From assembly GCA_001949185.1 (NCBI GenBank), contig BDGG01000014.1, positions 403,378-467,377 on the forward strand: a DNA stretch of 64,000 bases. The letters are read 5' to 3'. The translations under genes were made by a program, and so were the position numbers. Within the stretch, counting starts at the first letter, position 1. Each line of letters starts with the position of its first letter. Source of the stretch: Ramazzottius varieornatus (taxonomy: Eukaryota > Animalia > Tardigrada). Under the pieces are notes generated by a model. It saw nothing but the letters and a program-made list of their open reading frames with translations. It had not been told where the DNA came from and did not search any database. This document shows, in pieces, positions 14,491 to 19,659 of this stretch.

Positions 14491-15170
14491 TCAATTGAAC
14501 CATAGGAGGTTGAGTAGATCTCATCCGCTCCGGAGATTTTTTGGTCGGTATTGACCCCTACTGAAGACCGAAATGGCAATTGGACAACACCATCCTCGCT
14601 CGACGAGAAAATTCCCTCAAAAAGAACGGGAAAAAATCTGGAAACCATTGGAATTCGTCAAGTCGAGCTAAGGAATTAAGTTGTATGGCGTTAATCTGAA
14701 CCTTTCAAACTGAAAGCATGGACCAACCGGTGGTAAGTTGTTTTGTTAGTACATCCCGGATGTTGCACGTCGAAGCCAACGCCTGACGTCACGGCAACCT
14801 TAGCCAGCATAGCGCAACATTAGCCGGTATTTCGCTGCTGCTGCTTGGTGCGCATAGCAAAATGCTGGCTGAATCTGCGGTTGCTGGTTGCTTGGCCGAT
14901 GTTTTGTGTTACAGTACATCGGGATCATACACAATGCTCTGCAATTTTATACCAGCCGAGAGTCAACAGGAGAAAACATCTCGGATCACGAACGCTGAAA
15001 CACTGCATTACGCGTCGAGTATTAGCAACGATGGAACCAGAAAACTGCTTCTGAGCTGATTCTTCTACGCGAGTAATTGAACCTGGTCTGTGGCTTGCTT
15101 GTTTCAACCGTAGCTTACCGGCAGGGCACTCAAAGAACTGTTACTATAAAGGTTCGCTGCATCTGGCAAC

Positions 15171-15346
15171 TACGGTGCACGCGAAAATTAACCGTCGATA
15201 CTGGGCGTAACGTTCTAACTGGAGCTTATTTGTGGTCTAATCAATAACCTATATTGCTTGATACATGAGGAAATTTCATTGCCTATTCCCATCTCTTGGC
15301 TCCATCCAACGCCCATTTTTGACGGTTAATTTTCGCGTGCACTGTA
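15171..15346. mobile_element. TA-flanked Tc1/mariner-type MITE (family A)
   Basis: ~38 bp TIRs: tacggtgcacgcgaaaattaaccgtcgatactgggcgt / acgcccatttttgacggttaattttcgcgtgcactgta. Confidence 0.85.
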
Positions 15347-16122
15347 CGTCAGAGTATTTGTAGATCAGCCCCATGGGCGGTGGAACTTGATCGTTTCACC
15401 ACCCTGTGGAAATTTCCCGTACGTGCACGTACTGTGCCGTATGCAGTGAAGTTTTACAACATTTTCGATCGCTTACGAATGTGTCATTTTAACACCTTGA
15501 GCACTGCGCGATTTCGTGCTTTGAGAATACGATGCGGGAAAGTCACTTTCGCGGTGTTTCAACTGGTTAAAACTTGGGAGCGGTGCCAAATTAGACCAAT
15601 CACCACCTCATAGATTGGCCAAAATTTTGGAATATGAAGTAGAGTACGCCACCTGCCAACTCAAAACGGCCAGGCTTCAAGGTTTTCTACTGACCACTGG
15701 GCAGATATTTCCACGAATCTGAAACTGCTGCAAGATACTAAAATGTTTGGGCTCGCGCAACAAATATTTTGGTGACTCTGGACTAACTGAGAGCCTGACT
15801 GGAGTAATTTGCTGGCGACGCCGAAATCCCGTTGAGAGAGGAAAAAGATTCCGCACAGGTTTTGCAGAGCCAGTGTCCAGTAGCCGCTAGTTTTAGTTTC
15901 AAGAAGAGTTGATTGTCCGGGCAAACGGAAAAAAAAACGGGGAGCAAAAGGTGAACTGGAAACTCGCTACGCACAAATGAGTGTGCGCCGGGATAGTGAG
16001 TTTCCCGCTCCGTGCTCAAGGTGTCAACTTCTAAACGCTGGCTGCAGAAAAAACCACATCGTTGCTGCCGGAAATTATCTTGATCTGATCCGGGTTCCAC
16101 TAGGCAGCAGCTGGGAAATAGG

Positions 16123-18714
16123 TCACCATTTCGAAGTCGCTGGCAAAGGATCTTCGAAGAACGCTGATAGTACGCATCTGCTGGACCTCGTGAGTGACCT
16201 CGAAATGAAGTTGAGCAAATCCTCCCACGCACTGTAAGCTTCGTCTGTCAATTGATCCCCGAGGAAAAATTCTGCTGTATTGAGTCGACTATCCGCGTAC
16301 CACTACAGGATGTCTATAGGTCAGCCATTAAGCACTCGTTAATATCGCTAGACTACAGCATGCTTACCGCCCAGAACGCCACAGTATATGTCGAGGATCC
16401 TCGTGGGCGAGTGTAAGAGCTGTACCTGTTGTCACTGAATGATTCTATGGATCGCTGGAACACACCCAGGTCAAAAGTCGTCAGTCCGATAACGTGCTGA
16501 TCAACGAACCTGTGCGTAAAAGTCCCAGTTCAACAGCACAGCTAAGGGTGATTACTAGAATTCAGCGCAGAAGCAAGCCCACTTACGGGGACACATTGCT
16601 GACCGACTAGACCAACACTGGATTATCAAAGAGCAGATCGGGCTTCTTGTATTCGTATCCGTAGGCATACTGATCGACGGGTGTTTCTGGCTGGTTTATT
16701 TCAGTCCGGTTCACCCCGGTTGGTCCCACAGTCTCAAGCGTCTCCGGATGCCAGGTGATGATTCTGCGTGGAATCGACTGATAACTAATTCGACTTTCTA
16801 GCATATTTTTGTGATGCACAGGTCATCGAACAGAACATGCTTGAGTGCTCACGTCGCCACTACCTGCACGAGAAACGGAACATATCCGTTCGTCGTCGAA
16901 ACTCCCGTCACGTTCGCGGCAGCGGCTTTAGCTTTGTCCCAGGTTTGTTTGGCCAACTGAAGCTGTTCGTGGGTCATGCCTGTAAAGGGATCGACAGCTT
17001 TTCCTACCGTGGCCGAAAAGGATGGAATCGTCAGAGACGGGGCTCCTGCTGCCGGTCTTGGCTCTCGCGGCAGAACGGTTGAAGGTGTGACCACCACGAC
17101 TGTCGGAGGTGCATTCTGCCGGAACTCTACAGTGATATGGTCGCCTTCCGGTGATACCTCCAATTCACGGATTCTTGACTGCAGGCTTGCCATCGGCGTC
17201 GACCGTGTTGGGCCGACATGTGGCGATATCGGTAAAGTTGTAAAAGCTATTGGACTGAAGAGGATACAAAACTTCAATAGGAAGATAGGTGAGGACGCTG
17301 GGAGATTTTGTCAGGGCAAATGGTGTGCAGCGCTTGTAGTAGCCGATGGCGTAAAGATCGGCCACTGCAGTTAGCCGCCAAGTAATGGAGCGGAAGACGC
17401 TATAGAAGGCCGATCCTATTTCTAGTGTGTAAGCATCCCCCAGAAAATAGCCGGTGGTGGCGCTCAAATTCGTTGCTAGTCGCTGCCGGAGACAAAGTTA
17501 CCATCATCTGAAATTTTGTTTCAGGGTTGTATGAGACGATGAACTTACCAAATAGTGTTTGATGATGTCCTTCTGTGAGTCTCCAAAGGCCCAGTTCCTC
17601 AAGTAACTTTCGTATGCGACGTCGTCGTCTTGTTTCGTGTACCCCACTGCGTGATTCAATATGTACACGTCAAATTTACCCAGAAGTGGAATATTGGAGA
17701 AATCGAGCTGATTTATCCATGGATAGATTTCTGACCTGGGTCTCTTTCTACTAGATGAACTAGAAATACCAAAGTTGTTAACCATCCATCATGCGTCGTT
17801 ACTGATTTATCAGACAAACAGTCCTCCAGTGCCAAAACCGAGCAAACGGGATGTACTTAAATAATAGGCGATCCAGAGTCCTAGGGAGCAGCAAAATTAG
17901 ACAATTAGTTTTCTGGTTATTAGCGTGTCTAAGACAGCATGTGCACCCATCCTCTTGCGGCGAGTTCGTTTAGAAGATTCTGGACCGCTTCTCCTTCAAA
18001 ATTAAGATGAAATGTGGCAGCGTACCTTCCAAATCGGCAGGCTTGAATTTCGGCTTCTGTGTCACTCCAATATGATTTTGCGACTGTGACTCCATCCTAA
18101 ACATCACCCGGAATGTTGAAATCGAGCCATGAAAAACTGTTATGCTGATGACGATGTAAGTACAGTGTGTAACCTTGTCGTATGCATTGACGGATGGAAG
18201 TCCGATGGCCAGTGCACTTTGTGGGTACCACAGGGTTAGTCTGACAACGACAGCAACACGGCACACAGTTTTCGATCGCTGTACAGTCGCTTCAAAGGGA
18301 CCTTACACATCGAGCAGTAATAGGCATGAAAATGTTTGGTTGAATTTTCACCAAGGCTTACATGTAGTAGGCTTGTTTCCCGAAACTGCGCGCTCCTTCG
18401 CTTAAGACGGTGTCCGAAGCATTGGCTGCAGCTTGCAGCACTTTAGCTCATTGTGTCTTGACAATATCCAGCTGCTGGTACGATATACCCGATAAATAGT
18501 CAAACGGACGGTTGTTTGTGGATGCGAAAGAGCTGTTGGTCGTAACCGCAGTGGCACCCGCAGCAGGAATCGGTTTCGATAGCGTAAGGCTGGCTGGGGT
18601 GCTAGACGTCTCTTCTGCAGTGGTGTTCTGCTGTATCGTGACGGCGAACAAGCTAGAAGCTAAAAGTATTCCCAGCAAGCAGGAATGGTGGCAAGACGTG
18701 CGATGGGTTTCCAT
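16123..18714 (-). pseudogene. Secreted di-domain globin-like gene carrying nonsense/frameshift lesions
   Basis: Exons 18714-18362, 18240-18174, 18096-18026, 17880-17770, 17707-17549, 17482-16853, 16763-16587, 16509-16368, 16302-16123. Signal peptide, then two repeats with globin A-helix (GISYQQLDIVKTQ*AKV / GMTHEQLQLAKQTWDKA), B-C region (FGKQAYYI|LTLWYPQ / FLVQVVAT|IITWHPE) and G-H region (HYL|RLATNLSATTGYFLGDAYTLEIGSAFYSVFRSI / FWA|WYADSRLNTAEFFLGDQLTDEAYSAWEDLLNFI). In-frame TGA 18448-18450, TAG 16607-16609, frameshift in exon 4, and a frame break near 17165. Confidence 0.75.
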
Positions 18715-18856
18715 CACGAGAGGCTATTTTGACTACCTGAAGTACCACACAAAACTCAACTGAGTTTGAATATTGGCGTTCCGTCTATCAAATCACCCAT
18801 CTAAGGCAAGACGAAGAATTTGCTTATTCTTCTAGCTTTCTCAATGAGCGCGCTAT

Positions 18857-19468
18857 GCAAAAAAATCTTTGACCGACGATCATTCAAAGCTCCATCTCGA
18901 ATAAGCAATCATACGATACAACGGACTTGATCACGAACCTGCGAGATCGCTGGCCTAAAAAAGGCTTCGCAAAGCGCGTTCGTTGAGAGAGCGAAATAAG
19001 AATAGGCGTGATTCTTCCTTTCGATTAAGCGGTCAGTCAGCTTGAGGCCAACGCTAACAAAATTGTTATATTTTACAAATTCGGAATAAATTTTTTTTAT
19101 TATGTATTACAAATTCGGAATAATTTTTTCGGGTAATGGTTATCCATATCTCCGTCAAGTAGTAGTTTAATCGAATCCTCAAAACTGGTTTACTGTATGG
19201 AACTATACGCGAGACGGCTAAATAGCCGATGCTGAAAGTTGCGAAACTGTTGTCCACATTTCGTCAGCGTTGGCCTCAAGCTGACTGACCGCTTAATCGA
19301 AAGGAAGAATCACGCCTATTCTTATTTCGCTCTCTTAACGAACGCGCTTTGCGAAGCCTTTTTTAAGCCAGCGATCTCGCAGGTTCGTGATCAAGTCCGT
19401 TTGTATCGTATAATTGCTTATTCGAGATGGAGCTTCGAATGATCATGGGTTATGGATCTTGTTTTGCC
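18857..19468. repeat. Foldback / long inverted repeat (~185 bp near-identical arms, ~195 bp AT-rich spacer)
   Basis: 18879-19060 is the near-perfect reverse complement of 19261-19445; weaker similarity extends to ~18857 and ~19468. Confidence 0.92.
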
Positions 19469-19659
19469 AAAACGGATGTATGTATTTTTTAAAGCGCCGG
19501 CGAAAGTAAAAAATTCTTTTCACCAGGGAGGCCATAATCTTTAGAATTTCGCCCTGACTAAAAAACGGCTCGATCGGTTAACTATGAAGCTGAAGGGGAG
19601 CATCCTCGTGCTGAAACGAAAGACGATAGTGTATTGTACATCAGATGTGGCAAAAACCA

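Follow-up and report, generated by a model that had tools for sequence, protein, structure and literature searches.

The intron positions B12.2 and G7.0 are conserved from the ancestral globin gene (PMC7457136). At B12.2 a phase-2 intron splits the codon six residues before a Pro, and the globin X and globin-X-like genes of arthropods and tardigrades carry introns at B12.2 and G7.0 together with a central phase-2 intron (PMC7457136). The window analysed here, a stretch of 64,000 nucleotides from the tardigrade Ramazzottius varieornatus (contig BDGG01000014.1), contains a gene, termed copy A, whose two domains resemble globins in their intron positions and, for a relative, in the predicted fold. 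The sequence leans towards reading copy A as an unprocessed pseudogene of a tardigrade-restricted family of secreted, tandem, globin-derived proteins without canonical haem binding.

Copy A lies on the minus strand and runs from an ATG at 18714-18712 to a stop codon at 16125-16123. A sequence-only reading of the window had proposed a gene of nine exons at this place. On re-reading, its minus-strand exons, GT-AG splice sites and intron phases between 18714 and 16123 proved real, but only eight exons with canonical GT-AG junctions were counted. The ninth requires a 64-nt GT..AG pair with a weak donor at 17179-17116, which probably explains the earlier count. The introns are, in order, 121, 77, 290, 66, 89, 77 and 65 nt long and have phases 2, 0, 2, 0, 2, 2 and 0.

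The exons were searched singly. A tblastn search with the single-domain relative P0009 found both domains of copy A collinear, exon by exon. Exon 1 (18362..18714, on the minus strand as are all the exons) contains the ATG, a signal-like peptide, a Ser/Thr-rich stalk and the A and B helices of domain 1. Its 3' end is a B12.2-like split codon in phase 2, and it matches residues 14-93 of P0009 (E 7e-10). Exon 2 (18174..18240) holds the end of the B helix, the Trp-Tyr-Pro turn with the C2 Pro and the start of the CD region; it matches P0009 residues 94-111 (E 5.6e-4), and the phase-0 intron after it has a weak donor. Exon 3 (18026..18096), which encodes the CD/E region of domain 1 and ends in a phase-2 split codon, is matched weakly by P0009 residues 114-128. 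Exon 4 (17549..17735) covers the E-F-G region of domain 1, is homologous to exon 4 of paralogue B and ends at a G7.0-like phase-0 junction. Exon 5 (16853..17482) encodes the G and H helices of domain 1, the linker and the A and B helices of domain 2. It has two matches to P0009 (E 1.4e-6 and E 5.7e-13), and its 3' end is again a B12.2-like split codon in phase 2. Domain 2 continues with exon 6 (16587..16763), which comprises the end of the B helix, a Trp-His-Pro turn, a long CD region and the E region before a phase-2 split codon, and with exon 7 (16368..16509), which comprises the E-F-G region and ends at a G7.0-like phase-0 junction. Exon 8 (16123..16302) encodes the G and H helices and a short tail up to the stop codon, and its match to P0009 residues 175-206 begins exactly at the exon start. 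Elsewhere in the window, at 15171-15346, there is a hairpin with 38-nt arms and a 100-nt loop; its MIR841-like matches, on both strands, are weak and far under the gathering score.

Residues 10-24 of the copy A product form a signal-like hydrophobic core, and the stalk that follows is 62% Ser, Thr, Pro and Ala, which bears out the secreted architecture proposed earlier. The start of domain 2 matches the start of domain 1 (E 2.4e-5). The two-domain architecture thus results from an internal duplication, as had also been claimed. Were the gene intact, its product would consist of a signal peptide, a stalk rich in Ser and Thr and, in tandem, two all-helical domains of about 180 residues each. The gene had further been described as having many N-x-S/T sequons. 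Eight are present, but with 4.5 obtained from shuffled sequences the enrichment is not clear; the product may be glycosylated.

The genome (55.8 Mb in 200 contigs) contains four loci of the family, copy A and three further two-domain copies. A search for intact paralogues had been suggested; the three copies answer to it as paralogues, but copy B is riddled with lesions, copy C has one junction without a model and copy D is split. Copy B (C14:968.9-971.3k) has the same in-frame TGA as copy A and at least five further stops or frameshifts, which makes at least six lesions. A comparison of copies A and B over 301 codons gave differences at 71% of the synonymous sites and 33% of the non-synonymous ones (pS 0.71, pN 0.33). 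The two are therefore duplicates of old date on which purifying selection has acted for most of the time since, a history that tells against the pseudogene reading of copy A. In copy C (C14:144.6-147.4k) every exon is open, and no in-frame canonical splice was found for the central junction of domain 2. The intron at this junction (L003 1100-1300) has overlapping phase-2 and phase-0 donors, of which only the phase-0 donor joins the homologous downstream exon in frame, but it retains an in-frame TGA. Copy D is divided between the starts of contigs C11 (L006, G000:C11:1-2878) and C31 (L011, G000:C31:282-3551). Both parts adjoin the same repeat, in which there are transposase-like open frames, and domain 2 contains a run of N; the split is probably an assembly break at a transposon. 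The N-termini of copies C and D and of P0009 are similar to the signal-like N-terminus of copy A.

A HMMER search of 1.84 billion representatives of public protein libraries with a 247-residue piece of copy C matched ten proteins. One is an open frame of the window and eight are short nameless pieces from ENA/JGI environmental assemblies. The remaining match, P0007 (1950 residues), is an unrelated repetitive protein and was rejected as a family member. Among the matches, only P0009 (246 residues) is a single-domain member that is complete and spliced and has a signal peptide. The libraries include proteins of Ramazzottius, Hypsibius and Paramacrobiotus, but no annotated protein of a tardigrade was matched. 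A homologous-protein search with P0009 returned only P0009 itself, and a metagenome scan with a five-row family alignment found no relative. The family looks unannotated, in agreement with the earlier claim that it had escaped description and annotation, as it is represented among the 1.84 billion sequences by short environmental fragments only.

Membership of the globin superfamily was not detected by any sequence-based search. Pfam gave no globin, and no PF00042 hit at E values up to 10, for each exon of copy A and for P0009. A six-frame PF00042 search of the genome recovered none of the four family loci, although it picked up seven true globin genes and even single exons of about 40 residues. 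Sequence and profile searches of the PDB were empty, and ESM Atlas features gave matches at noise level for the whole protein and for the domain alone. The hhalign comparison of the family with an alignment of tardigrade globin-X-like proteins was not significant (probability 0.3%). Its sole match pairs the N-terminal motif of the family with the globin pre-A and A helix, including the Trp at A12. The globin-like domains that had been claimed are thus invisible to profile methods, but their descent from globins is made plausible by the model of the relative and by the introns. The negative outcome of every sequence-based test favours a different explanation, in which an unrelated, lineage-specific, secreted all-helical family shows a globin-like model, globin-like motifs and two globin-like introns by chance or model bias. 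This explanation has a minor but real chance of being correct, and the evidence from fold, introns and haem residues bears on it as follows.

Two family alignments, A7 and A9, were clean enough for AlphaFold modelling. With A9, which has clean rows over the A-B and G-H regions, the model of P0009 has a pTM of 0.57 and eight helices in globin order. Residues 50-100 and 160-220, which correspond to the A, B, G and H helices, reach a pLDDT of about 90, and the model is poor in the E-F region (residues 106-160). In Foldseek the best 50 matches of this model are globins (50/50), with a probability of 0.80-0.99 and E values of 0.09-0.3; the target-length TM-scores (TMt) are mostly 0.44-0.62 and are lower for multi-domain targets. 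VIA-align was run independently of Foldseek over 48,161 representatives. Its best 50 matches are all globin-fold chains, with 126-145 residues aligned over whole chains and Z up to 11.0, although a Z of 11 falls inside the warning range of the program for helical models. The model obtained from A7 is unfolded (pTM 0.33), its structure search yields no globin, and it was discarded as fold evidence. The suggested check by AlphaFold and Foldseek therefore gave globins only for the A9 model of the relative and none for the A7 model, and the 3-on-3 helical sandwich is seen in P0009 only, in the A9 model only, with medium confidence. The lack of a globin fold in the first AlphaFold model (A7) and Z values that are not over the warning level speak for an unrelated helical family. 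However, the best 50 structural matches are all globin-fold in two independent searches and cover whole targets, which argues against it.

The intron positions also argue against an unrelated family. All six domains of copies A, C and D have a phase-2 intron in the codon six residues ahead of the Pro of a Trp-aromatic-Pro motif, or of the residue that replaces it (6/6), and in each of them the distance from a phase-0 junction to the Leu-Gly of the G-H corner is exactly 13 residues (6/6). Human beta-globin has the identical spacing from G7.0 to the G-H corner. In the A9 model of P0009, the end of the B helix is one residue short of the Pro, and the H helix begins at most one residue from the place predicted by intron mapping. 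Two intron positions thus match to the nucleotide and in phase, in six domains, with independent motif anchors. The B12.2-type phase-2 and G7.0-type phase-0 introns that had been claimed are present in both domains of copy A. They would represent the ancestral B12.2 and G7.0 positions, as mapped by motifs and by the helix limits of the model rather than by a residue-level structural alignment.

The sequence-only reading had also described an E-helix intron shared by both domains. The central introns of copy A are phase 2 in both, but their equivalence is not borne out, as the Pro precedes them by 40 and 53 residues and a nearby His follows them by 27 and 4 residues. Copies C and D have a phase-1 central intron in domain 1, and their central intron in domain 2 is placed 34-36 residues past B12.2, a distance compatible with position E10.2. 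A true globin gene of the same genome, L026 (G000:C2:1755626-1758748), has the same B12.2 intron arrangement as the family, a phase-2 central intron that follows the distal His by a few residues, and an intron at the G-H corner in place of G7.0.

The haem contacts are not conserved. The F8 place, about 12 residues before the G7.0-like junction, has no His in any Ramazzottius copy; P0009 alone has a His triplet near it. A different His, closer to the E-F junction, is found in several copies but aligns with a Phe in domain 2 of copy C. The CD1 place, six residues after the C2 Pro, is occupied by Ile, Val, Ala or Leu rather than Phe in the copies read. Since neither His F8 nor Phe CD1 is conserved, canonical haem binding by the family is unlikely to judge from its sequences, and the haem-carrying extracellular haemoglobin that had been suggested is unlikely too. 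The absence of both residues also counts in favour of an unrelated helical family. Against this stand the fold and the introns, which suggest that the domains may descend from a 3-on-3 globin and have diverged past the reach of profile detection.

Copy A has three disabling lesions. The first is an in-frame TGA at 18448..18450 (minus strand), which is codon 89 and aligns with Trp A12; the position has Trp in domain 2 of copy A and in the relative P0006. The second is a frame break in the linker at 17165..17168 (minus strand), where a TGA (17167-17165) closes the upstream frame and the frame downstream of it is displaced by one base (+1). The third is an in-frame TAG at 16607..16609 (minus strand), in domain 2 coding sequence that is conserved with paralogue B, which has Ser there. 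All exons of copy A are otherwise open. With the TGA at codon 89, the frame break and the TAG, ordinary decoding cannot give the two-domain product, and copy A cannot make the protein as it was originally read. Disabling lesions in a recognisable intron-bearing gene are what is found in an unprocessed pseudogene.

It is unlikely that copy A is instead a functional gene, in which the UGA is decoded, the linker break is a 64-nt intron and the TAG is a difference of strain or assembly. The GT..AG pair at 17179-17116 could restore the frame of the linker and the remaining exon sequence is all open, as such a gene would need. However, the candidate intron has a weak donor, and in paralogues C and D this stretch of exon 5 is part of a single uninterrupted open frame. 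The TAG lies inside conserved coding sequence, and copy B bears many further lesions of other kinds. An inverted repeat in the presumed promoter, at 18859..19463 and 145 nt upstream of the ATG, has arms of about 205 nt (18859-19063 and 19258-19463) and a spacer of 194 nt, and parts of the arms are 97% and 86% complementary. It is probably a foldback or MITE-like insertion, which argues further against a functional gene.

A point for a decoded UGA is the TGA that copies A and B have in common. It occupies the same site, the Trp A12 codon, in both copies despite the 71% synonymous difference between them, and the codons that flank it differ synonymously. A TGA lesion inherited from the ancestor of the two copies is hard to square with their low non-synonymous divergence. 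The alternatives left are parallel TGG-to-TGA hits in two decaying genes, for which chance is roughly estimated at about 5-10%, or a decoded UGA. Selenocysteine at this site was rejected. The region 14500-19500 of the window has no match to a SECIS-like element, which also counts against a functional gene, and homologues have Trp, Thr or Leu at A12 and never Cys. There is a slim chance that the family is a secreted tandem globin-fold class without canonical haem ligands in which the UGA at A12 is decoded as sense. If so, it would be an undescribed tardigrade class of secreted globin-fold proteins, and the UGA would be a site of read-through or of A-to-I editing to UGG and not a lesion.

The working, glycosylated, haem-carrying extracellular two-domain haemoglobin of the sequence-only reading has a signal peptide and two globin-like domains in its favour, as in the extracellular haemoglobins of nematodes and branchiopods, but it is scarcely credible given the broken frame, the lack of His at the F8 place and of Phe at CD1 in every Ramazzottius copy, the silence of PF00042 and sequons without clear enrichment.

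A decaying copy of a globin-derived family, the reading favoured for copy A, could have arisen as follows. An intron-bearing globin gene would have gained a signal peptide, and its globin domain would have been duplicated in tandem within this ancestral gene. Each domain would have kept its helices in globin order and its introns at the ancestral positions B12.2 and G7.0, and the product would have lost the haem ligands His F8 and Phe CD1. Because the canonical haem contacts are lost, working members are less likely to carry oxygen than to be structural proteins or secreted binders of another, possibly small hydrophobic, ligand. In Ramazzottius the family is decaying, and copy A no longer encodes the full protein by ordinary decoding. 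Since copy A is probably dead, it is of interest for the age of the family's decay and for the shared TGA.

If globin descent is correct, this would be a rare case of an animal globin domain that was tandemly duplicated, secreted and stripped of its haem ligands, and whose ancestry is readable mainly from introns and fold and no longer from sequence. It would bear on the limits of globin divergence and on the use of intron positions as markers of deep homology. It would also add a lineage-specific secreted family to the proteins found only in tardigrades.

Several known systems resemble the family in part. The N-terminal domain of RsbR (PDB 2bnl) is a haem-less globin-like sandwich without a proximal His and matches the P0009 model at Z 6.8. 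However, RsbR is a bacterial, cytoplasmic part of the stressosome and has no introns or motifs in common with the family. Kumaglobin of Ramazzottius varieornatus (PDB 5zm9, 5ziq) matches at Z 10.6 with 136 residues aligned and stands at rank 27 in Foldseek. In contrast to the family, it is a single-domain, true haem globin with bis-His (hexacoordinated) haem, and it is detectable by sequence.

The globin-X-like genes, for which P0011 and P0012 served as comparators, likewise combine introns at B12.2 and G7.0 with a central one, and the only hhalign match of the family is to the A helix of a tardigrade globin-X-like protein. The family differs in having two domains and a signal peptide instead of an N-terminal acylation motif, and in lacking a PF00042 signal, His F8 and Phe CD1. 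The genome also contains a globin-X-like gene, L019 (G000:C12:500906-504244), the product of which is 100% identical to RvY_15539 of Ramazzottius varieornatus, in agreement with the tardigrade origin that had been proposed for the window. The orthologues of L019 in Hypsibius and Paramacrobiotus have an acylation-type N-terminus (Met-Gly-Asn-Cys), and the Paramacrobiotus orthologue is named 'extracellular globin-1-like' at NCBI.

The di-domain haemoglobins of the nematode Ascaris (PDB 1ash) and of Daphnia resemble the family in architecture, as they are likewise secreted and have two tandem globin-fold domains, and Ascaris domain I matches the P0009 model at Z 6.9. These are abundant, haem-binding respiratory proteins that Pfam recognises, whereas the family has lost the haem ligands and copy A is broken. 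The domain duplication of the family most likely occurred independently of that of the two-domain haemoglobins of nematodes and Daphnia.
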